64,000 bases of DNA, from NCBI GenBank assembly GCA_904063045.1, contig CAJFCJ010000004.1:1481713-1545712 (forward strand), given 5' to 3'. The DNA comes from Dimorphilus gyrociliatus (taxonomy: Eukaryota > Animalia > Annelida). Shown piece after piece: positions 3,601-41,650 of this stretch (its first letter is position 1; each line of letters opens with the position of its first letter). The position numbers and the translations under genes were made by a program. Under the pieces are notes generated by a model that made no database searches, was not told the origin of the DNA, and saw only the letters and a list, made by a program, of their open reading frames with translations.

Positions 3601-5469
3601 TGCTCCATTTCTGCATCACCTCTTTGGACTGCTCCAAAGTCTAATTCCACTTCATTATCACCCTGAATTTTGACTGACGAGGCAGCACCGCCTCCAACAC
3701 CTATTCTATAAACAGGTCCCCCAACTTTACAAATCTTCATCCCTTTTTCAGGATCTAATTTATGAATATCACTATCATCTAGAGACCCAACTCCACCACT
3801 AAACATGATCGGTTTTATCCATTCTACTCGTTTCCCTCCTACTATTCCACCAAAATTTCTTGCAAATCCGGTAATAACTGGTTCACCAAACTTATTTCCA
3901 TAATCAGACGCTCCATTACTGCCTTCGATAATTATGTCCAAGGGTTTTGCAAAATTAGGTGGGTATATCGCAGATTTGTCTTCCCATGGTAAATCAAGGT
4001 CGTCCAACAACAAATTTCCAAAAGAATATCCAGCTGAGCCGGCAACAACATTAGCACCCCTTCCAGTTGCTTGAACATCTCTAATTCTGCCTCCCGTACC
4101 TGTAGTAGCTCCAGGGAAAGGTGCTACACCTTGATAATCATTTCAAAAGTAAAAAAAAACTGCATGAAGATAATTATTACCAACCAGTAGGAAAGTTGTG
4201 AGTTTCAGCAGTGAGGAGGGCGTGTCGTTTGACGCTTTTGAAATATTCAAAAGGTGAAGCGCTTTCCGGTTGACTAGGCCTTAAAATGTCAACTTGGCTG
4301 CCGTGAATCGCACTACACAGAAACCATAAAAAATGCGTCGGTAAACAGCATAACAGGACAATAAAGAGAGATAAGGTTAGTATAATCTATGGTATAGCGA
4401 CACTGCTGAAGTTACCTGCTGTTATCACTAAATTTGATAACGTTGTTTGGATTCGAATACTCTTGTGTATTCATAACCATTTGAAATAGAGAATTTTTTT
4501 CTTCTTCACCATCAACGACCATCCTGCCTTTAAAAAACCAATGACGCGAATGTTCGCTGTTAGATTGGGCTAAATCGAAGCATTCTACATTTGTTGGATT
4601 ACGCCTTATCTAGAGTTTTAAAAGTGAAAGTTTTACAGAAGTAAACAGTCTTCAATTTAACTACTTTATCGCTAAATAATTTTGTATAATAATCCAAATC
4701 CCAATCATCAAAAGCTAAGCCTAAATCGTTGCTGACTTTCTTTAAGGCAGATCGACCTTCCCCCAGAATATCAACTTCGAAAACTTCATTGGGATTTACA
4801 GGTACTTGAAAGGATTTTAGGGTTTCCTCATAAACGCATTCCGTCATTTTGTCATATAATGCTTGTGTCACCTTCAATTTTTCTCCTTTTTCCAATATCC
4901 GCTTTGTCTTTATTAAATAGATAACCGACGTCTCCACCCGACTTATCTCTTTTAAGCCTATTTGCTGACATATTGAAACCACATTTGTACTGAATGGAGT
5001 ACAAAAGTTCAACCTTCGAAAACAGTCAAATTCAGTAGAAATTCATATTTACTACAAAATTTGAAGTAAGTAATTGAATAATTATATACCTTGGTCCTAT
5101 TTCTATAGATAGTTGACTTTTTGAGAAATCTTTCGATTTCAAGATACTTTCACTTGTAATTTCATTATTTTTGAATGGTTCTTGAATAATCCAAAGAAAT
5201 TTCTCTTTTTGAACATCATTTAATGCTAAGAAAAGACTAGATTATATATATTTTAACAGAATGTTCAGCTAAAAGCAAAATAAAAACACTTATAAAGAAT
5301 TCAATAGGAAATGAAACATACTTGTAGAACTTTCTACGTAATAACACCCTTCTGTTTTAAAGTCTTCAATAATATCAAGTTCGTTTAGAGCTTTAATAAT
5401 TCGAGACTTGATCCGGTTAATATTTCCCTCGTGTAAAGCGTTCTTTTTATAGAATCTTGAAAGTTCCAT
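663..5469 (-). CDS. PFAS: Phosphoribosylformylglycinamidine synthase (large PurL/FGAMS), multi-exon
   Basis: Exons encode HNFPTG, '[12 protein letters not shown]', 'KPIMFSGG', '[10 protein letters not shown]', 'DGGKDSLSM' and the glutaminase 'GVCNGCQL' and 'MPHPER' triad; first ATG at 5469; many short introns. Confidence 0.97.
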
Positions 5470-6094
5470 GCTTCCTTTTTTAACCAACTTGTAGAAAGTA
5501 AAAATTACAAAGTAATAGAATCTTTGTTTAAAATGCGCGTTTTTATTGGTCGAAATGCTAACCTTTATAAATTTTCCATTCTATTGTTAGAGAGACTTTT
5601 TAGAACAAAGGAATGGTTCAAAGTTCAGCTGTTTTTTTCACTTCGTATGAGCATAAGTGTACAAATCTATTGTCGCTCAGAAAAAAGATTGTATTATGTA
5701 TTAACAATGGTACACCCGTCAGTAACACGATAAATTTGCATAAAAGTAGTCAATGTGAATTTTATAAACTGATTTTGGAATATGTAAATAAAAACAGATG
5801 TCTAAAGAATTTTATTGACTAATTGAACAAAGTTCTAATTGTATTGATATAAAATCGGCGCCAACGTTCTGAACTTCGTAACGTTTACTATTTGATTTCA
5901 AACGCAGACTATCATTCACGATTCACGTAGAATTTCTAAAACTCTGTAAAGGTAATGAAAGGTTGTAAAAATGTTACCCAATTACAACCCTTTATTCATC
6001 TTTCACTATAGAAGCTCGGGATAAAAACTATTATTGAAATCGTGCCTTTTTAAATATTAGATAATTTTTCTAATAAAAAGTTTCTGTGGGAAAA

Positions 6095-8726
6095 TGAGAC
6101 AATCAAACACAAGGTGAGTAATGTGAATTGTAAATACTTTCAACTTGAAACTAACTATATAATCTTTCATAACAACAGACGGACCATAACTGTTGTCCAA
6201 TCCCAACCTATCAGTCAAGTGGGATTTAGGAATCATCCTCCTAGAGATCCCCATTCTACCCGTAAGTTCTTAACTTTTACGATGGCTATAAATAATTAAT
6301 CTACTGTATCTAACAGCTGTAGTTAGACCACCATCTTATGAGGTATCTGTTGAGGTATTGATATTATTTTAATCTTTTATATATTGATCTGACATAAGTT
6401 TGAAAAATCTTAGCCACCTCCTCCATACGAAGCCATAAATGCTATTCGCAAACTACCTAAACCTCCCAAACCGGTCAAACCAAAAATATCACCGAAACCT
6501 TCAGCAGCCTTAAATGATGCCGCGATATCTCGTAACGGAGCCCCTGCGGCAAGACCGCGCTCTCTTGTTCCGTCACATTCCGATAACAATATTAGTAGTA
6601 CAATGGCTACTGCATCTGCAGCTAGGAGCTTTGCAAGTTCAAATCCAAATCTTATTCGACAAGCACCATCCGTAGCTTCAAGCGTAGCAAATTCGGGTCT
6701 TATTCAAAAGGCTCCGCAAGCAGCAGCCTTTGCGGCAAATTCGGGTCTTATTCAAAAGGCTCCGCAAGCAGCAGCCTTTGCGGCAAATTCGGGTCTTATT
6801 CAAAAGGCTCCAGAAGCAGCAGCCTTCGCAGCAAACTCGGGTCTTCTTCAAAAGGCTCCAGAAGCAGCAGCATTTGCAGCAAATTCTGGTCTTATTCAAA
6901 AGGCTCCAGAAGCAGCAGCATTTGCAGCAAACTCGGGTCTTCTTCAAAAGGCTCCAGAAGCAGCAGCATTTGCAGCAAATTCTGGTCTTATTCAAAAGGC
7001 TCCAGAAGCAGCAGCATTTGCAGCAAACTCGGGTCTTCTTCAAAAGGCTCCAGAAGCAGCAGCATTTGCAGCAAATTCTGGTCTTATTCAAAAGGCTCCA
7101 GAAGCAGCAGCATTTGCAGCAAACTCGGGTCTTCTTCAAAAGGCTCCAGAAGCAGCAGCATTTGCAGCAAATTCTGGTCTTATTCAAAAGGCTCCAGAAG
7201 CAGCAGCCTTCGCAGCAAACTCGGGTCTTCTACAAAAGGCTCCAGAGGCAGCAGCCTTTGTCGCAAATTCGGGTTTTATTCAAAAAGCTCCAGCAGCAGC
7301 CGCCAGTGTAGCAAATTCAGATTTTATTCAAAAGGCATCTTCTGTAGCTTCTGCTCAGTCCAAAAGCAATTTAATCTCTTTTAGTCCAGAGAAAGAAACA
7401 CAGCCGCCAATTAGCCTGCCCAGATCTTCTTCAACTATGGGTTTATTAAGCGTACCTAAGAACAATGGATCTGAAACTAGTCAACCTAGTCGTTCAAATG
7501 TTAGCTCTCTAGTGGATAGATATAAAGATTTGCGAATTATTGGAAGTTTTACGAATACTTATAATACGAATAAGCCTAAAGCTGAGCAAGAAGTAAATAG
7601 AACTAGATTAGCGGAGAATAATCCATTTGAACTAATAGGATTAAATGAATCGGCTAATAGTGCTGGACAAAATGATAGCACCACAAATTTCGCATCAGAA
7701 TCAGTGGAGACAACAGCAAGTAATAACAATTTATCGCCTCCGTCAAGAGCGAATAACAATCATATTTCCTTAAATACGAAAAAGAAGAGACCTCCTAGAC
7801 CTCCTCCACCAAAAGCTCTAACCAAGCCTAATAATCCGGAAATTAAGCACAAAGTCGGTCCTACTTCCCTTTACAAAAGTGTAATGACCGAACCTCATGG
7901 ATTAGCTATACTTGATTACAACGCAAAACAACTCAATGAATTATCCTTCAAAAAAGGTGATATAATACTCTTACAAAGAAGTATTGATTCAAAGTGGATC
8001 TATGCTAAAAACGGTGATAAAGAAGGTTCCTGCCCAGTGAATTATATGAATATCATAAGCAGACCTCAGTATTTTATTGAACCTATAGTTGAAGTTTGCT
8101 ATGCGAAATTTCCTTTTACGGGAGAAAACTCAACTGAACTATCTTTTAGAGAAGGTGATAAAATAAGACTTATTGATAGGATTAGCGATGAATGGCTAAT
8201 TGGAGAATTGAACGATTCGATAGGAAGTTTTCCACTGTCATTTGTGGAATTGCAGTCTCCGATTTTGGATAATTTAAAAAATGATAAAAAGCAAAGTCTG
8301 ATAAAAAAAGATGTAAATATTTACACATACCATTTTTATTTTCAAAATTTAAATAACTTTATTTCTGTTCAAAATATTTAGATAAGAATTGCTATTGCCG
8401 AATACGACTATATATCTGACGCGTCAGAAGATCTTCAATTCAAAAAAGGCGAAGTTATTAATATTACAGAATTTATTGATGATAATTGGATGAAAGGACA
8501 AAGTTCTAATGGATCAACCGGTCTCTTCCCATCTAATTTTGTCCATATAATTCCTAATGAAAAGATCGCCTGTGCCGAATTTGATTACGAATCTAATGTT
8601 GAAGGTGATCTTTCTTTTAAACAAGGAGATTCGATAATAATTTTAGAAGATATTAACAATGAGTGGGTTAAAGGTCAAGTTAGTCATAAAGTGGGGATAT
8701 GTCCTAAGAATTTTTTAAAGTTTTAA
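6095..8726 (+). CDS. Multi-SH3 adaptor (SH3D19/Eve-1-like) with four C-terminal SH3 domains, Pro-rich segments and an N-terminal 16-aa repeat
   Basis: ATG 6095 followed by short exons with GT/AG joins; PRPPPPK motif; four SH3 units (e.g. 'DYNAKQLNELSFKKGD..W..G..P.NY', 'EFDYESNVEGDLSFKQGD..W..G..PKNF'); intron at about 8311-8380. Confidence 0.85.
6663..7334 (+). repeat. Coding minisatellite: 14 x 48 bp (APEAAAFAANSGL[I/L]QK)
   Basis: Unit starts recur every 48 nt (6663, 6711, 6759...); central units alternate between the I and L variants (96-bp higher-order repeat). Confidence 0.97.
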
Positions 8727-32166: not shown

Positions 32167-35042
32167 GTCATGAAGGGTTCAGTGACCTTATCTCAAAAAC
32201 AGTTAGACGCTATCCTGACAACGATTGGAACGTTAACTGAAGAAAATGCAAAACTACAAGTAGCCCTTGGTAAGTATTTATAAAGAAAACTAATATGGTC
32301 AAATATAATCTTTAACGTATACGGAGTGCAAAGCGCCACTTACAAGAATATATAGCACTTTGTGATATTATATGTATCATATGTATCGTGTATCTTACAG
32401 AAACTGAACCAGCTAGCAGTGAGTTTATTCACCGTTTGATAGTTTTTTGTCTTTATGTTTTCTAACGTTTTTAAATTGATAAAACTCGCACGATAACAAC
32501 TAATTTTAACCCTGTTTAATTTTATCCAAGTGCAAAAATTTATTTCTCCCTTTTTTGATATTTATATATATATATATATTCAGTATATATTGTATCTATT
32601 TATAATATATATGTATATAATATATGTACACTACCTTCATTGCTAGTTACAGCTTTTATGTATAAAATTACATTTTCAGAGGAAGAAAAGTCAGCAGCTC
32701 TGCCGCTTCCTGAGTCAACAATTCCACCTCCATCAGTTGCTGAAACTACGATAAATAGTACTCATACAAAAGAATATGAAGAGTAAGACAATTGTTTTTC
32801 TGGGGAACAAACGTTTATATAGTGTTTTTCATTATTATTCATACTTAGCGTGCAAACAAAAGGAAATATAATCCAAAATGAAACTCCAAAACCGCCTTTA
32901 GCAATTCCGAAAGCTCATATGACTTTGGCGGAGAAAAAACGCTTAGAATGGGAAAAGGAAAAAGATCAAGCAAACTCTAATTGGGATCCCTGGGGAAGGC
33001 CAGGTTGCGGCGCAAAAAATGCAACAGTTAATACTAATCCAATAAGAAACAATACCCCTCCTGCTTCCAGGACAGGTAGTAAATATCATACAGTTTCTTT
33101 TTTCATTCAATTTTTAATTTTATTTATGTAACAGGTGCTGAACGCATTCACGTTAATCCGACCAGCGTACCTGGTCTTGAATCTGCCTCACCCTCTGTCC
33201 CACAATCTCGATCGCAACCAAATTTAAGTTCTAATCGAGGTACTACTACTACTCCAAATCAAGTTGCTCCAGCAGCAATTAGGAGTTCGTTTGTTATCGG
33301 TGGTGCTGCGCCAGATGAAAGTCGTTTTGACAGAACTAAAGAGCAAGAAAAGAAACTATGGCTAGAGGAACTAAATATGCAGAGAGAAGAGCAACGTCGA
33401 AAGAAAGAAATGGAGAGAAAATTAAAGAACAGTGATGAACCAACGTGGGCAGAGCCGAGAAAAAGCGTGTCGAATACAGATCAAACTACAGGCTATGTTC
33501 TCAATTCGTATACAAGCCCTCCTAGTAATACAGAACACTCTTACCTAAGGGGAGCAAACGTTCACTTAGATGAGGTCACTAAGCGGGAAATGGATGAAAA
33601 GAGAAGACGACACCTTGAGCATCAGGAAGCCATAAAAGCGCAAGTAGAGGAGAAATTAAGGAAGAAACAAGAAGAGAAAGATCGTCAAATGAGAGAAGAA
33701 ATGGAAATAGAGAAAAAGTTAGCAGAAGAGAGAGATGCTTTGAAAAAGCAACAAGAATCAGAGCAGATGAAAGCACGGACGGCAGCCCAACAACAGGCGG
33801 AGCGTATCAGACAATTAGAAGAAGCTATGAAAGACGCTGCTACAGCTGCAGAAAGAGATAAACGCGAAAAGAGATTAAAGAAATTGCAGAGATCTGGTCA
33901 CGATACTGCAAGATTGAGTGATGCCTATGCAACTGGTAAATATTCATATTTCTATTATCAAATACTATAGGGCGAAATGGCTACAGAAAGTCTTTTTTTC
34001 TCTAAACCTTTCTTGAATTGCTTCAATTAGACGAATCTGAGGAATTTGAATTCGTACAAGGTAGTATATGCGTGATTAAGAAACATTTGTTAAATCCATC
34101 ACTCTCCAAAAAAAAATCACTGCATGCTTTGGTGTTTAATTAAACTCTTATTCGTTTCCATTAAAATCTCTTTTTTTCTTTTTATCTCTTAGAGAGGTCA
34201 GATGAAATCGATTTTCCTAAAGATATTGAAGAACCGAAAGCTTTCGATTTACCCCCTGCGACCAGTAGATCAAGAGAATTTGGTGTTCAAGCTAATTTAA
34301 ATGTAGCTGATAATGATAGCGATGATGTTCAAATTGAATATAAGGCCCTACCTACTCCCCCCATTAAAGTTGTTCCAAAGCCGAAAGAAAATACAAATGA
34401 CAGAAGACGAGTTACTAAACAGAGTGAAAAAGCTCAAAGACCAACGCAACAAAGACCACCCCCAAGAAATAATCCTCGCAATAAAACAAGAGACAATCAC
34501 CCAAAAAGGGAATTGGTTAGTAAAAAACCGTCTCCTCCACAAGTTAGGTCAGTTAAACCTAAATCTCCACCCGTTCCGTCCGTTCATAATCGAAAGAAGA
34601 CACCGCCCGTTATGGATGCTCCAAACGAATTTGTTCCATTTATTAGATCAGTGAATGTCCTCGATCCTTCGGTTGCCGAAGACCCTTTACCAGTGTCAAG
34701 GGAACAATCAAGCGTAGTAAGAGGTCGAAAAGCTTACAAAGAGGGTCAACAGCCGGCAAAATACGGTACAGAAATGTTGAACCGAGACGACCCAATTTTT
34801 AATCCAGGATTAGTAAAAGATAACCCCACATTGAGACAATCTCGTATCTTACAGCATCTATCTGATCTACGCAGAGTAAGTAAATTATAATATTCAGTGC
34901 AAATATATTTATCTATATTTATACCTATATTTACTGTATATACAGTATATACTTATATTTATATATATATATGTATTATTTTCAGGGTCTATTGTTAAAG
35001 CAAAGAGAAGCGGAAGTTGCTATGCCTAGTGTTGATAGTTAA
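31848..35042 (+). CDS. CCDC66: Coiled-coil domain-containing protein 66 (centriolar/ciliary); start codon not resolved, lies upstream
   Basis: 'SYLRG..REMDEKRRRHLEHQEAIKAQVEEK', 'EFVPFIRS' and C-terminal 'RQSRILQHLSDLRRGLLLKQRE' match recalled CCDC66 motifs; polyQ at about 32133-32166. Confidence 0.8.
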
Positions 35043-35364
35043 AATATGTGATATAATCCTGTTTTATTTATTTTTTTTATCTTAAACCCTGAAAACAACT
35101 GTTTCAGGTGTGTTATAAATAAATATGATACACTTTTTTTTACTTAATCTATGTCATAGAGGGCGGTATTGGTGTCGGTTAAAATGCAGTAACATACCAT
35201 GACAGACAATTAATCGTTCGTCTCTTGAGTCCATTTCTTCGGTTGATACGAAGCAATAAGCTTAGCTATTTCACTCTACTAAATTCATCAGTTGTAAAAT
35301 ATCTAATCGATCGATAAAATCTTATCAAATATTGGTAACTATAAACAAAAAAAGCAAAGAAAAG

Positions 35365-37520
35365 ATGGGCTGCGTTCCTAGCACAATTGATAATGATACA
35401 AAGAAAACGAATGAAAGCGTCGCGGATGGTAATATCATTACGAACATTGAGCCTATTATTAAATCAAATAAAGGTGCTCTTGTCCTCTATGCAAGTGAGA
35501 GCGGAACTTCGGAAGGTTTCGCCAGGGATATGGCCAAAAAATTGCCAATTTCAACCAGATTAATATGTATGAATCAGACTTCGAGTAAAGAACTACTAAA
35601 AGAAGAAAGGATATTTGTAATTGCTAGTACGTACGGAGAAGGAGAAGCTCCTTCGAATGGTCAAAATCTCTATTTTGATCTATTAGAATGTAGGGAAAAT
35701 GGGTGTAAATTTGATAATTTAACTTTTTCCGTTCTGGCTTTGGGATCTTCAAAACACGTTGATTTATGTAATTTCGGTAGAAATTTTGATAAATTATTGC
35801 ATGAATTGGGAGGGTCAAGAATTGAGGAAGTCCAACTAGCTGATAAAATGGCAGATCTACGGCAAATGGATGTTTATAAAGCGTGGTTTAAACGAATGAA
35901 AAAATGGGTTAAAGTATGGGACATTTAAATGATCAGTATTGTTACGTTTTCATTCATGGCGTTCTATTTTTAGATGAAAGAATATGGCTTGAACGGAGAC
36001 TATAATGAAGAAGAAGAGAATGATGAAGATGAAGAGTCTTTAGCAAAAAATTTTAAATTATCCTATAAATCAGTGGAAAACGATGAACCTCAATTAATTT
36101 ATGGTAGGGTATTTTTTTAACGTTACATAATATCGAGTTTTGAAAGAACTAGTATACTCTTTTTTTTATATAGCCCTAGAAAAAGTACATAATAGATCAA
36201 TAGCAAGTTGCAGAGTAATTAGCGTTACAAAACTTCAAAGTCCTTCATCCGAGTAGGTTTTTCTTTTTATTCAATAAAATAATAATATAATTCTAAAAAT
36301 GACCTAATTTATTTTGAATGTTTGCTGCTGCTTTTCGCAATAGGAAGCAAACAATTCTGGTTAAATTACTCATACCTACAAGTATTCAACATAAACCTGG
36401 TGATCATGCTGTTATTCTACCCCCAAATCCACATGATGAAGTTGAAAGATTAATGTCTTTTATTTCGGATCCTCCAAACAAACATTTCAACATTGAGGAA
36501 ATGATACGCGGGAAATGGATTGAACAAGACCGACTACCTTCTTGCAGCTTACAAAGAGCTTTGACCTGGTATCTGGATATTATGGCAACACCTTCAAAGG
36601 AGTTCCTATTATCATTGAAACAATTTGCTAAACATGACGAAGATCGAGAATTAATAGGAATATGGACAGATGTGGGAGAATTGGAATGGAGGTCTGGGGC
36701 CCCAACTCTGGCGGATACTTTGTCATTTTTAAAATCAGTTAAGGTCCCAACAGCCTGGCTCTTATCAGTTCTCCCTTTGCAAAGTCACCGCAGTTACAGC
36801 GTATCTAACAGTTCCAGTGTCAACCCTAATGAAATGCACATTATGGCTGCCGTTGTAGAATACGAAGCGGGTGGGAAGGTAAGAAATGGTCTTTGTTCTG
36901 GGTGGATGTCAACACTACAACCAGGAGATATGGTTCCCGCGGGTCATAGATCTATGGCCTCTTTCCATTTACCGAAAAACCCAAAGGAGCCTGTAATCAT
37001 GGTTGGAGCTGGAGCCGGGTTATCTCCTTTCAGGAGTTTTTGGCAGGAAAGATACTGTAATAGAGAAGAAGCAGGTCCGTCATTGTTGTTTTTTGGTTGC
37101 CGAAATCCAGATTACGATGATTTGGTACGAGATGAGAGACAAGACTTGGAAGATAAAGGTATCATAGAAAATATAACAGCCTATTCTCGTCATGGTCCAA
37201 AAATGTACGTTCAAGATGCAATAAAGCTCCATCAAGATAGATTATACGATTTATTGATAAATCAAAAAGCTCATATTTATATCTGTGGTGATGCTTCAGT
37301 AGCTTCTGGCGTTCGAAAAGCCATTTTGGAAATATTTATGGATAAAATGGCTATAAGCGATGCCGAGGCAAAAAAATTCATTCGGAAAATGAGGGTTTGT
37401 AAAATTCTTCATTAGTTACATTAAGATAATTACTTTTTTCTTTTTCTACAGAGTGAAAACAGGGTACACGAAGATGTCAACAATATTAAGCACGCGAACA
37501 ATGCACTTATAATTAAATAA
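35365..37520 (+). CDS. Stand-alone NOS-reductase-like diflavin (FMN/FAD/NADPH) oxidoreductase; exons 35365-35913, 35974-36103, 36174-36252, 36344-37394, 37452-37520
   Basis: Flavodoxin motifs YASESGTS, STYGEGEAP, ALGSS; FAD motif RSYSVS and GLCS; NADPH motifs GAGAG, FGCR, AYSR, KMYVQD, YICGD, HED. All introns are GT-AG and in phase. Confidence 0.9.
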
Positions 37521-37986
37521 TTAACGCTGCTAATCAAATTCATTATCATTTATAAAATATAAAATATATTATATACATATATACTGTATATGCAGTATAT
37601 ATATATATATATATATATATACTGTATAAATAAGCTCAAATACATATATTTTCTTTACTTATGTGTAAATGATACTGCTGTCTTATGGTATACTATAAGA
37701 TGTAAATCTTTTTTTTGTACCGGTATAGTACGCCATCTGTCGGATCCAAAAAATAGATTGAAGGGAATAGCGTATCATTAAATAGCTGTCAATTTAAACA
37801 GAATCAAGAAGATAAGATTGAAGTTGGGCAAGAATATCTTGTTACACTTATTGTTTTATTTATACATTCTCCTCTATTTATGCAGAATATACAATGCATT
37901 GTATTCTGTATGTAAAATAAATCAAAAGTTAGTTTATTTTCGTACTCAATTATTAAAAAGATTATTAAAAGAATTAGCTTTCGCCC

Positions 37987-40151
37987 TCATTTATCTTTCT
38001 TCTCATATTTCTCTCTCCATTTGGTATAAAGAGACCTAGAAGAGACAAAAAATAATATCTAAATCAATAGGAAAAATAATAACGTTAATTATCTGAAAAG
38101 AGAATGAAAACTAACGCCAATTCGATTTGACCATCCTTATTTGTAAGGTCGTCGAATAGAGTAAACCATTCTTGATCGGTCAAGTCAATTCCAGCGTTAA
38201 CTTTGATGGCATCTTCAAAAGATTTCTTGTCAATCACAGTAACTGATTGGTCACTGGCAATTCCGAATAATGAAAATGGCGTTTTATCTTTCATATGAAT
38301 AATTTGGCAAAGAATTTCAACAGCTTTTCCAGGTTTTAACTTTTTTGAGTGAATATAAGTTTGATAAGTACAATTAATTTTCTTTCCTTTGTCTTCGAGA
38401 TTTTCTAGTAAATCAATAAAGTTCTTCTTTACAGTAATACCCTGGTATAAAAAAAAGGCTCCTTTCTATTAATATGTCTAAAAAAGGAGATAAAATTCCA
38501 TTACCTGTAAATCCAGTGAGGAGATAGACGAGTCTGAATTCTTTGATATATTTTGCAATAAAGCAAAACTACCAACGTGAGTGAAAGGATTCTTTGATAG
38601 TTTTAATATTTTAATGTGTTCATTCTTTGTCATTGAGAATGAAGAGAAAATAGCTAAAGTTAAATCGACAAATCTGTTTGCTCTTAAGTCGATAGTCCCA
38701 ATACAATTGTTTTCTGCTAAAGCTTTCCCTAAGTCTTCGGCTGCTTTCCGTTCTCCGAATCCATTCCAAGATAAGTTCAATTCGTCGATTTTCTCATTTT
38801 CAGATAAGCATTTAGCAAGAACGCTTGCAGCCTTTCCAACAATCTGATTCCAGGATATGTCGAGCTTTTGTAAACTAGTGTTATTGACTGTATATGTATA
38901 CATATATATGTATATAAATGCATAAATTAGAAAGTACAATCGATTATAAATATCGTTAGTTGTTGAACATCACTCACCTAGAGCATTAGCAAGAGATTGT
39001 GTTGCTTCTAATCCGAGATCACATCTACTCAAACCAAGTTTTAGTAAAGTATTATTCTTCTGTTCAAAAGAGGAAGAAAGATATCATAAACAATAATATT
39101 TATACAGGAAACATTTATGTTTTGTAGATTAAAACGAGAAATAATCCTAGTTTTTCCGTATCACATATCCTTTTGTTATGTATAACAATGTAAATGAATA
39201 CAATACCTGTAGCAGTGACAGTAATATTTTACCACTTCTATTCCCTAATTGGTTTCCTTTGAAAGAAAGAAAAATATAGATTTTTTTTAAAAAAAGAAGA
39301 AAAAATGCAAAAAACATGAACTATCCACAACATACACAAAATACAACAGTATAAATGAGTATAGAATGATTTATACTAACCGGAAACATCCAAATTCTTG
39401 ATGATCTGGTTCGTTAGTAGCATACTCCCAACGGTTTTGAAACCTTTATGACTGATATCGTTGTAAGCTAGATTCTAGAAATGGATATTGTTTTTATTGT
39501 TTTTGAAGTAGAAAGAAAGGAAAATATTGATTAAATTTATCACTATCTCTATTCGATTATCGTTTTTTTATAAACTAGTTATGAATATTAATTATTAAAT
39601 TGTCATTAAGTAATTAGATAAAGTATGAAAAAAAATATGAATACGCAATAAAAACTTACCAGATCAAAAACATAGATATTGTCAACTAATTGATAGCACA
39701 GATGCTCTACTCCCTCGTCGCCCATGCCGTTGTACGAAAAGTCAAGTTTCGTTAGCGTGTTATTAACCCTTAAAGGAGCCGCTATTGCCTTGGCTCCTCT
39801 CGGTCCGAAATAATGATCCCTGAGAGAAATTTGATCATCTCCTGCATGTCTTAGAAAATAAGATATAGGAGTCACACCAATTTTTGAACATTGTCTAAAA
39901 TAAATGTTTTTAGCAAGAGCTTGATGATCATGCAAATCATTGTGAACTTTAGTCTCTTCTTCCAAGTCTGTATCGTATTCGCTATCACTAGACAATGGTT
40001 GATGGTTCTGAGTGTTGGAAGGCTTCTTCTTTGAAAAGCCCGAATGTAGTCTTGTAACTAGTCCAGAAACTTTATGTTGCTTATCCCGTGATTGTATTTT
40101 CCTTCTTCCTTGATTAGATCCAGGATGAGAGTCGGAATTATCCGAAAACAT
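37987..40151 (-). CDS. LRRC74: Leucine-rich repeat protein LRRC74-like (RI-type LRRs)
   Basis: 'YFRQCSKIGVTPISYFLRH..LRDHYFGPRGAKAIA..NNTLTKLDFSYNGMGDEG' and repeated 'L..LDISWNQI' motifs; last exon predicted to end KYEKKDK*. Confidence 0.8.
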
Positions 40152-41650
40152 TATAACTCCTATGCCGATAAGAATGAATTCTGCATAGATATAACAAAGT
40201 TTCCGCACTTTTTTTCAAGTGTTGGATTATAGCCGATTTTGCTATTTACGGTTTAGAAATCTTGTTATTATTACAGTTCGAATACAACTGAATAGCGATT
40301 GAATAGAGACTGTAGCTACTTTGCAGACAATGAATGCAATCGTTATATATGCTGCAGTTGCTAAGTGCTGCTGAAAAGTTTTCATGAATGCATAATTTTT
40401 CTACATTCATTTGCATAACAGGAATTTAATTATATACCTAGTTTTTCAATAATTATATTATTAATAAATAAACTGTAAGTGCGTGTACAAACAAAATATA
40501 TATGAGGAAAACTTTAACTTTATTGACCCTTTTATTATACTACGTCACGTGACAAAGAGATTATAAGTTTATAGCAAAATATAATATTTCTAAACAAATT
40601 TCAGTGTCATTCCTTTAACAATAAAGCCTATATTTCCTAAATATTTAACTAGTAAATTATTTTAGTACTTTTAATAAATTCTTGACGATTTTTTCGCTAT
40701 AAACGACGAAAAGGACAAATAATCCCTTTATTAAATCAATTAATTAAAAAAGAAATTGCTCTTTAAAATTCTATAACAATTAATTAAATATTAACAGAGA
40801 GCCAAATGCGAAATCTATTACATAATTCTTCTTATTTTTATGATTTATTAAATTTTTTCTCCTCTTTTGACGGAAGGAGAAAGAGAGCTAGGAATACAAT
40901 TTTTTTCTTTTTTTCTTCTATTTCCCCTTTCAATTTCTTTGTGCTGACAGGGACAGTTTTTCTTTATTCGTCCTTATATATTCCTTCTCTTTTCATTCCA
41001 TCAATCATTCTATATTTCTCCTTCTTTCTCTTTCCTTCCTCTCTCTCTCTCTCTCTGTCTCTCATTTCTGTTTCATAGTTGGTATAAAAATTATATTCAA
41101 TCTCCTCATATTCATTAATCAATGCCTACTAAGGCCATCTACATTTCAAATTACAAAAGATATATATAAAGCCTTACAATAAGTCATATACCAATTGTTT
41201 TTATTTTGATATTCGTCTTATTTAGATATTGCTCGACCTAGTTTGTTTGGAAACGATGACAAACAAATCTAACAACAGCTTACATCTTTATCTATGCTCT
41301 CCCACCCACCATTCATTTTTTCCCTTTATGTATTGATTCTATTTCACAATAATCAATAATAAAGCCTAGGTCAGCATTTCTTTTACTATTTTAAGGTTTG
41401 GGTAATACTTAGTAATGTAAAACTCATATAAAAGATCTAGCATTTGTGTTTAATTTATATTGTCGCGAAATCAAGCGAGGAGGCCTTAGCAACAGTAAAT
41501 ACTTCGATCGGCCTAAACTAGTATAGATACGTACAATTCTGCCATATTTATACCTTTATTCTCTCAGGAGTAAAATACTCGGCTGTTTTTAGATTAATCA
41601 AATATTGAAATATCCACAAATTTTTAAGATATTATTTATCAATCAACTTG

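Follow-up and report, generated by a model that had tools for sequence, protein, structure and literature searches.

Gene structure and transcription

The window analyzed here is a 64,000-nucleotide stretch of the Dimorphilus gyrociliatus genome (contig CAJFCJ010000004.1), and all positions refer to it unless stated otherwise. On its forward strand, positions 35365-37520 contain a five-exon gene whose product of about 626 amino acids carries flavodoxin/FMN, FAD and NADPH domains (Table 1). All introns are of the GT..AG type, and the coding sequence extends from an ATG at 35365, in a favorable context (A at -3, G at +4) and opening the N-terminus MGCVPS, to a TAA stop codon. The upstream neighbor is CCDC66 (PF15236), whose stop codon at 35040-35042 lies 322 nt 5' of the reductase ATG, in agreement with the gap of about 320 nt in the original prediction. 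The two genes are represented by distinct transcript contigs, and that of CCDC66 ends at 35107.

Table 1. Features of the reductase locus, in window coordinates
Feature	Position	Strand	Description
Conserved intergenic block	35158..35192	+	AGAGGGCGGTATTGGTGTCGGTTAA; directly 5' of the transcript contig start
5' untranslated leader, minimum extent	35198..35364	+	Begins at the transcript contig start
Exon 1, 183 aa	35365..35913	+	MGCVPS, variable linker of ~30 aa, complete FMN (flavodoxin) domain
Exon 2	35974..36103	+	Acidic hinge NEEEENDEDEES, then the first part of the connecting region; both joints in the transcript contig
Exon 3	36174..36252	+	NOS-type linker LEKVHNRSIASCRVISVTKLQSPSS; joints in the transcript contig
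Exon 4, 350 aa	36344..37394	+	FAD-binding and NADPH-binding domains
Exon 5, 22 aa and stop	37452..37520	+	SENRVHEDVNNIKHANNALIIK: NOS-type NRxHED motif, then a short tail

A spliced transcript contig of 1986 nt is colinear with the genome from 35198, 167 nt 5' of the ATG, a position that marks the end of the contig and not a mapped transcription start. Its joints at 35913/35974, 36102/36173 and 36252/36344 reveal three introns directly. For the fourth intron, the evidence is the contig's loose end: beyond 37394 it continues as AGTGAAAAC, matching the opening 9 nt of exon 5 (37452-37460). The leader includes a single four-codon upstream ORF at 35199 and an in-frame TAG at 35263; the contig start and this stop codon argue against splicing to a distant oxygenase exon, an arrangement under which the proposal of a stand-alone gene would have failed. 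Trans-splicing is not expected either, since a splice leader was not detected in the 5' UTRs of D. gyrociliatus (PMC7854359). The intergenic block listed in Table 1 is near-identical in a related species (L011, about 7650-7684), where the surrounding intergenic DNA has diverged, and represents a candidate core promoter or factor-binding site.

Conservation and taxonomic range

The related species carries a syntenic ortholog that is 75-78% identical and shares the same four intron positions and phases. The reading frame is unbroken over five exons in both species, and the start context and stop codon are conserved. Between the orthologs, pN is 0.135 and pS is 0.657, with a dN/dS of about 0.1; in exon 1, where pS is saturated, a pN of 0.137 indicates that the FMN domain is under purifying selection. 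Exon 2 is the least conserved, matching the ortholog at 24 of 40 residues, and exon 5 retains 20 of its 22 residues. The stand-alone reductase is confirmed as a real, expressed gene under selection.

The known carriers are these two species and a set of metatranscriptome fragments about 97% identical, so the conservation is shallow. No member beyond the two close species was found among 1.84 billion representatives, and word searches with exon 4 and exon 1 returned matches in one related species only. This narrow taxonomic range limits the generality of our findings.

Domain content and missing NOS regions

The Pfam and database searches were run exon by exon, and the phylogeny likewise covers part of the protein. 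Exon 1 matched Flavodoxin_1 (76.5 bits, 3e-21), while exon 4 matched FAD_binding_1 (123.9 bits, 9e-36) and NAD_binding_1 (47 bits, 4.5e-12), all above their cut-offs. The product therefore has the arrangement of a diflavin reductase, in which a flavodoxin-like FMN domain is followed on one chain by FAD-binding and NAD(P)H-binding domains.

None of the five exons matched NO_synthase, the Pfam heme/biopterin oxygenase domain. Every NOS in the comparison, the worm's own among them, has a basic calmodulin-binding helix; alignment and inspection revealed no such helix in the reductase, whose FMN domain is preceded by only 36 residues, polar or acidic, that do not align with it. Together with the in-frame stop in the leader, these results bear out the claim that the gene encodes neither an oxygenase nor a calmodulin-binding region. 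The autoinhibitory insert, also said to be absent, was not found in the FMN domain when it was aligned with its homologs, and the worm's own NOS has both the helix and the insert.

Cofactor and catalytic residues

The reductase keeps the RxYS and GxGxxP motifs, the Ser-Arg and Lys-x-Tyr residues for the 2'-phosphate, the catalytic Cys of Cys-Gly-Asp, the catalytic Ser, and the catalytic Asp of HED, which sits in the HEDV of exon 5. Among these, R149, Y151, G221/G223/G225/P228, S281-R282, Y288 and C314-G315 occupy invariant columns of the family, and S152 and K286 occupy nearly invariant ones. The FMN phosphate loop and the first stacking Tyr (STYGEGE) are also retained. The change from RYYS to RSYS, which had been listed as a deviation, is present in the sequence but loses its significance because other family members have Y, F, A, P or L at that position.

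Two other proposed deviations are genuine and are shared by the related species. The second FMN-stacking Tyr (LGSxxY), which is Tyr in 11 of 11 compared homologs, is His in the reductase (LGSSKH), and the FAD-shielding aromatic is Asn (HEDVNN). At the latter position, C-terminal tails read by eye have Phe or Tyr in NOS rows and Trp in CPR-like rows; by a rough motif count, 22 of 26 NOS rows have F or Y, and in the exceptional rows the motif search had slipped out of register. The pair of aromatics around the FMN ring is incomplete, and the C-terminal FAD-stacking aromatic is missing. In CPR, the Y178D substitution results in the loss of FMN. Either change in the reductase, from Tyr to His or from the aromatic to Asn, could cripple or repurpose electron transfer. 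An altered NAD(P)H preference had also been suggested; since the 2'-phosphate residues that go with NADPH (Ser-Arg and Lys-x-Tyr) are kept, the lost aromatic is the one argument left for it.

The replacement of two normally invariant cofactor contacts, and the conservation of the replacements themselves, raises the question of whether the protein is a catalytically impaired, NOS-derived pseudo-reductase. Such a protein would fold and might bind NADPH or FAD, would shuttle electrons inefficiently, and could serve as a membrane-bound NADPH/NADP+ sensor, scaffold or regulator. We consider this unlikely, as the remaining FAD, NADPH, catalytic (Ser, Cys, Asp) and 2'-phosphate residues are kept, the FMN phosphate loop and the Tyr of STYGEGE are intact, and the FMN domain is under purifying selection (exon 1 pN again).

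NOS ancestry

In a search of the PDB, exon 4 scored 223 bits against the nNOS reductase and about 150 against CPR and MTRR, and the best solved relative of exon 1 was the iNOS FMN domain; exons 3 and 5 alone, too short as queries, gave no PDB match. Among the 1.84 billion representatives, the best matches after an ortholog fragment and one fused Nymphon model were NOS or NOS fragments, and the best oxygenase-bearing matches were all NOS, with 37-40% identity. Similarly, local alignment of the exon 3 linker gave a median score of 41.5 for 26 NOS proteins, compared with 17 for 80 diflavin reductases of other kinds, and the motifs of the linker and C-terminus (..VHxR..C.VIS...LQSP.S.(K/R)QT and NRxHED) are NOS-specific. 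Two introns, one before KQTIL and one before exon 5, coincide in position and phase with introns of the worm's own NOS. A careful maximum-likelihood tree places the reductase inside animal NOS (99/99) and splits NOS from the rest (100/99), with Physarum-type NOS outside the clade that holds the reductase and animal NOS. The scores, the motifs and the tree support the assignment of the reductase to the NOS type, and not to CPR, MTRR or NDOR1, as the original prediction had proposed.

The two-species clade sits on a long stem branch of about 1.06 substitutions per site, and in an AU test a placement outside all oxygenase-bearing NOS was not rejected (log-likelihood difference 9.9, p 0.20). Both observations would suit an old, independent diflavin reductase lineage that is sister to the NOS reductase domains and was never derived from a full-length animal NOS. 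This origin seems improbable to us: the free tree nests the reductase within animal NOS, and the NOS-specific linker, the NRxHED motif and the two introns identical to those of the worm's own NOS all point to descent from a synthase. An old lineage would also require losses almost everywhere, since its members are restricted to two close species among all the representatives searched.

Several database proteins were considered as further stand-alone NOS-type reductases and rejected. P0019 (a Nymphon "NDOR1," ranked second) is a fused model with 171+139 bits per copy and groups with non-NOS reductases in the tree. A cluster member of P0088 carries oxygenase sequence, P0160 proved to be one fragment of a protein of 1443 aa, and the reading of P0097 begins at contig base 3, so that it may be incomplete at its N-terminus. 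In P0027, P0040 and P0042, the flavodoxin domains are only partial. Most oxygenase-less matches in the NOS clade proved to be fragments, and truncated NOS-like models are common in databases.

Genome context

A six-frame search of the whole genome found a single NO_synthase locus (contig C1), fused to its own complete calmodulin-gated reductase, and no oxygenase-only NOS. The worm also has a canonical CPR (contig C7), an MTRR and a probable NDOR1, so the reductase is not a stand-in for a lost enzyme of these kinds.

These results weaken the earlier suggestion of a split NOS, in which the reductase would act in trans on the product of an oxygenase-only NOS gene. The idea draws on the NOS type of the reductase and on bacterial NOS oxygenases, which use separate reductases. 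It is nevertheless very improbable because the genome lacks an oxygenase-only NOS; moreover, FMN docking onto heme in animal NOS is controlled by the calmodulin-binding helix, and the reductase has none. Finally, a decaying duplicate, a pseudogene or a mis-modelled fragment of a larger gene, which the abundance of truncated models and fragments noted above might bring to mind, is scarcely credible for a gene whose frame is intact over five exons in two species at saturated synonymous divergence (dN/dS ~0.1), whose start context and stop are conserved, and whose spliced mRNA contig has an in-frame leader stop.

Predicted lipid anchor

The N-terminus reads MGCVPST in the gene and MGCFPSK in the ortholog, and the next ~30 residues have diverged. 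Matched by eye, it fits PROSITE pattern PS00008, applied here as Met-Gly, a small uncharged residue at position 3, Ser/Thr/Ala/Gly/Cys/Asn at position 6 and no Pro at position 7, and it has a Cys at position 3. The persistence of MGCVPS/MGCFPS amid divergent residues is consistent, at the level of the motif, with the lipid anchor originally predicted, which probably attaches the protein to membranes. Compact MGC motifs of this type occur in Src-family kinases, G-alpha-i subunits and globin X. In the worm genome, at least three globins start with MGC in frame with the globin domain, and for three further globin matches an ORF beginning with MGC lies no more than 1.5 kb upstream.

Proposed origin and function

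We favor, with moderate confidence, the view that the gene is a lineage-restricted duplicate of an animal NOS that lost its oxygenase and calmodulin exons and was kept as an independent, expressed diflavin reductase. The lost exons would be those at the 5' end, which encode the heme oxygenase domain and the calmodulin-binding helix. Myristoylation of Gly2 and palmitoylation of Cys3 would then hold the enzyme on the cytoplasmic side of membranes, in a manner comparable to the transmembrane helix of cytochrome P450 reductase. Electrons would pass from NADPH to FAD, then to FMN and on to an acceptor. Because calmodulin gating, the autoinhibitory insert, the long C-terminal tail and the FAD-covering aromatic are gone, the enzyme should be constitutively open; because it comprises only the electron-supplying half of NOS, it must pass electrons to a partner and not make NO. 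The FMN domain would hand them to a separate membrane-proximal acceptor, most plausibly a heme protein, and O2 reduction may be a side reaction. We infer that the enzyme is active and that its FMN site, with His for the stacking Tyr, is occupied.

The reductase could be dedicated to the worm's MGC-acylated membrane globins, forming a two-component, membrane-assembled "flavohemoglobin," although we rate so specific a pairing as distinctly unlikely. If it exists, reductase and globin would share a myristoyl-palmitoyl tag and meet on the same membrane leaflet, and the couple could act as an NO dioxygenase, a nitrite reductase or a met-globin reductase. A NOS gene would then have been recycled for NO removal or nitrite-derived NO instead of arginine-based synthesis, and the unshielded FAD and His-stacked FMN might be tuned for the globin partner.

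Animal NOS has been described as always a fused, calmodulin-gated oxygenase-reductase (PMC10073611). Our literature searches on reductase-only NOS, myristoylated diflavin reductases and Dimorphilus NO signalling returned nothing relevant. To our knowledge, a NOS reductase alone has so far been only a laboratory construct; the worm reductase is a natural one. It offers a natural experiment in which evolution has removed the calmodulin site, the autoinhibitory insert, the C-terminal tail and the FAD-shielding Phe together, in a protein that also has a rare His where FMN is stacked. It may represent a fifth class of animal diflavin reductase, distinct in its membrane targeting and presumably in its acceptor. 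In addition, NADPH-diaphorase staining, a common proxy for NOS in invertebrate neuroanatomy, could mark reductase-expressing cells that produce no NO.

Comparison with known systems

Animal NOS reductases, especially those of the inducible, insert-less type, give the best scores and have the same order of FMN, connecting, FAD and NADPH regions. The worm reductase shares the linker, the NRxHED motif and a clade with animal NOS, and two introns with the worm's own NOS. Unlike these synthases, it is a separate gene without an oxygenase or calmodulin-binding helix, has an N-terminal MGC, and carries Asn for the FAD-shielding Phe and His for the FMN-stacking Tyr. Its second FMN loop (STYGEGE) is more CPR-like than the STFGNGD of NOS, and its tail extends only 12 residues beyond the FAD-shielding position. 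Endothelial NOS, also of the NOS family, is N-myristoylated and palmitoylated, and this membrane targeting by N-terminal dual acylation is what is predicted for the worm reductase. In contrast to the worm protein, eNOS is a full synthase under calmodulin control, and its palmitoylated cysteines lie elsewhere than at position 3.

The N-terminal MGC motif is shared with globin X and other MGC-acylated membrane globins, a likeness that serves as a lead only. Electron transfer from a reductase to a globin has precedents in flavohemoglobin and in globin-bearing cyanobacterial NOS. NDOR1 and methionine synthase reductase are likewise stand-alone diflavin reductases with the same three domains; they are cytosolic, score lower and fall in clades separate from the worm reductase. 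The best functional analogy is with CPR/POR, a stand-alone, membrane-attached diflavin reductase (attachment being predicted in the worm) that serves separate heme-protein acceptors and has the same three Pfam domains. CPR differs in its N-terminal transmembrane helix and in its ..DVWS end, which places Trp over FAD; the worm reductase scores about 150 bits against it and lies outside the CPR clades.

Gene architecture and transcript

The stand-alone gene encodes a NOS-type diflavin reductase of approximately 626 amino acids, and none of its exons matches the NOS oxygenase family in an exon-wise Pfam search. Its four introns, each bounded by GT..AG, measure 57-91 nt; the median intron of the published D. 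gyrociliatus genome is 66 bp (PMC7854359). The upstream neighbor is CCDC66, and the gap of about 320 nt originally predicted between the two genes is confirmed by the position of the CCDC66 stop codon. The 3' neighbor is a spliced, expressed leucine-rich-repeat gene of the LRR_6 type that is syntenic in the related species. (TA)n and (TATATAC)n microsatellites lie on both sides of the reductase gene.

Features of the stand-alone reductase gene and its surroundings (window positions)
Feature	Position	Strand	Remark
Microsatellite	34900-34984		last CCDC66 intron
CCDC66 stop codon	35040-35042		322 nt 5' of the ATG
Conserved block, CTGTTTCAGGTGTG.TATA	35099-35118		ortholog contig L011 ~7596-7615
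Conserved block, AGAGGGCGGTATTGGTGTCGGTTAA	35158-35192		ortholog contig L011 ~7650-7684
Whole reductase gene	35365-37520	+	start MGCVPS
Exon 1	35365-35913	+	complete Flavodoxin_1 domain (Pfam)
Exon 2	35974-36103	+	
Exon 3	36174-36252	+	NOS-specific linker match
Exon 4	36344-37394	+	FAD_binding_1 and NAD_binding_1 (Pfam)
Exon 5	37452-37520	+	NOS-type NRxHED motif
Microsatellite	37550-37632		right after the stop
LRR_6-type gene	37709-40208	-	3' neighbor

X2, one of two public sequencing runs that contain this region, is evidently a transcriptome, since its contigs are spliced. One of them, of 1986 nt, contains the joints 35913/35974, 36102/36173, and 36252/36344 and ends about 10 nt inside exon 5. 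Its 5' end, at 35198, lies 167 nt before the ATG, a contig end not being equivalent to a mapped transcription start. The leader carries an in-frame TAG at 35263 and a sole upstream ORF of 4 codons; therefore, the protein of this mRNA begins at MGCVPS. No splice leader was detected in D. gyrociliatus 5' UTRs (PMC7854359). The CCDC66 transcript contig stops at 35107, with no overlap with that of the reductase. In X1, a marine metatranscriptome, exon 4 fragments (~97-99% identical) are found together with a spliced CCDC66 contig.

Two blocks of the intergenic region are conserved in a related species. The first, of about 30 nt, is near-identical amid diverged DNA; it sits directly 5' of where the transcript contig begins and may be a promoter element. 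The second surrounds the CCDC66 contig end and may be a 3'-end processing signal.

Probable origin within the animal NOS family

All analyses were performed exon by exon, and the trees were built from exon 4 only. The predicted affinity with NOS, rather than with CPR, MTRR, or NDOR1, is upheld by several observations. Among solved structures, the nNOS reductase gives 223 bits with exon 4, versus ~150 bits for CPR and MTRR; the nearest structure to exon 1 is the iNOS FMN domain. In a search of 1.84 billion representatives, the exon 4 matches that rank highest after the ortholog are all NOS, either oxygenase-bearing or fragmentary (233-160 bits, 37-40% identity), with CPR-like proteins ranking below them. 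The exception is a Nymphon model, P0019, which ranks second overall with 311.7 bits, the sum of two fused copies (171 + 139 bits); it groups with non-NOS reductases in the tree and was dropped as a NOS-type stand-alone relative. The public model labeled "NDOR1" (P0019/P0167; Nymphon striatum KAG1654611.1, KAG1654612.1) is 2062 aa long, with two diflavin-reductase copies and a Core-2/I-branching enzyme domain, and is almost certainly several genes merged by annotation.

In both a quick tree of 112 rows and a careful one of 58 rows, the reductase and its ortholog nest within an animal NOS clade that includes Hydra, Strigamia, Owenia, scorpion, mollusc, tardigrade, and vertebrate NOS, with support of 99/99 in the careful tree. 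Physarum-type NOS falls outside this clade, and all NOS split from other reductases at 100/99. The caveat is that the stem branch of the pair is long (~1.06) and that a placement outside every NOS row survives an AU test (p 0.20). Independent of the trees, exon 3 matches the NOS-specific linker, its local alignment scores having a median of 41.5 with 26 NOS and of 17 with 80 others, and exon 5 has the NOS-type NRxHED motif, unlike the CPR-type ..DVW. Moreover, two of the four introns, the phase 2 intron ahead of (K/R)QTIL and the phase 0 intron ahead of the C-terminal xxNRxH, match introns of the worm's own NOS in position and phase. The parsimonious reading would be that a NOS was duplicated at the DNA level and then lost its 5' half.

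Other diflavin reductases and the ortholog

A six-frame search of the 77.9 Mb assembly (349 contigs) identified a single NO_synthase locus, which runs on into its own reductase, and no oxygenase-only NOS. The suggestion that the stand-alone protein is a split-NOS partner thus finds no oxygenase to serve. The canonical NOS (L013, G000:C1:1645000-1654999, ~3940-7890) is of constitutive type, with a calmodulin-binding helix and an autoinhibitory insert, and it carries the stacking Tyr in GSSAYPKFC as well as RFYS and HQDIFG. It also has two introns missing from the stand-alone gene, at LQRF|YMDIS and inside SREPNQPK|TYVQD; no PDZ region occurs in its inspected part. Canonical CPR and MTRR and a probable NDOR1 are present as well; therefore, the stand-alone gene is a fifth diflavin reductase, not a substitute for a lost one.

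Another species carries a syntenic ortholog on a Logan contig, L011 (second sample, L012), where CCDC66 again precedes it and the LRR gene follows on the opposite strand. The five-exon layout is identical, with matching intron positions and phases, and amino-acid identity is 75-78%. With pS at 0.657, pN at 0.135, and synonymous sites close to saturation, dN/dS is ~0.1. The first six residues read MGCVPS in the window and MGCFPS in the ortholog; the next ~30 mostly differ. The unusual residues SSKH, RSYS, and HEDVNN and the entire C-terminal tail are kept. Intact synteny, shared introns, low dN/dS, and these conserved residues largely rule out a decaying duplicate. On present data, the reductase-only family appears limited to two close species.

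Predicted function

We propose that the protein is a diflavin reductase that is constitutively open and independent of calmodulin. With Gly2 myristoylated and Cys3 palmitoylated, it would be tethered to the membrane, and it would relay NADPH-derived electrons to a separate acceptor. As originally predicted, the aligned protein has neither a calmodulin-binding helix nor an autoinhibitory insert; the nNOS connecting-domain loop of ~8 residues and most of the C-terminal tail are also missing. At the FMN site, the phosphate loop (SESGTSE) and the first stacking Tyr (STYGEGE) are retained, as are R-x-Y-S, G-x-G-x-x-P, the Cys-Gly-Asp motif, and the Asp of HED. Ser-Arg and Lys-x-Tyr of the 2'-phosphate site are also kept, which argues that NADPH remains the donor.

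Two predicted substitutions are real: the second FMN-stacking Tyr, present in 11/11 compared homologs, is His (SSKH), and Asn replaces the FAD-shielding aromatic (HEDVN), which by eye is F/Y in NOS tails and W in CPR-like tails, the motif count being rough and out of register on some rows. RSYS is no deviation, as family members carry Y, F, A, P, or L at the residue concerned. Mutants of nNOS F1395 and CPR W676/W677 reportedly link the shielding aromatic to coenzyme preference and a conformational lock; by analogy, its loss could loosen NADPH preference and remove the lock.

The predicted lipid anchor stands at the level of the motif: the N-terminus, shared by both species, agrees with the PROSITE pattern for N-myristoylation, which points to a putative dual acylation anchor. 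Of the ~10 globin loci in the genome, at least three (L015, ~1360; L016, ~1354; L017, ~1336) encode a globin domain that shares its open frame with an MGC start, the starts being MGCSASK, MGCSATS, and MGCQQTK. At three further loci (L020, L021, L024), an ORF beginning with MGC lies no more than 1.5 kb upstream of the globin match. These loci suggest an enlarged group of membrane-bound globins, probably with dual acylation, a lead to the acceptor that would share the membrane address of the reductase.

Relation to known NOS

Oxygenase-less look-alikes in the databases turned out to be fragments or fused models, and our literature search found no natural reductase-only NOS derivative described in animals. 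Animal NOSs are reviewed as always having calmodulin-binding domains (PMC10073611).
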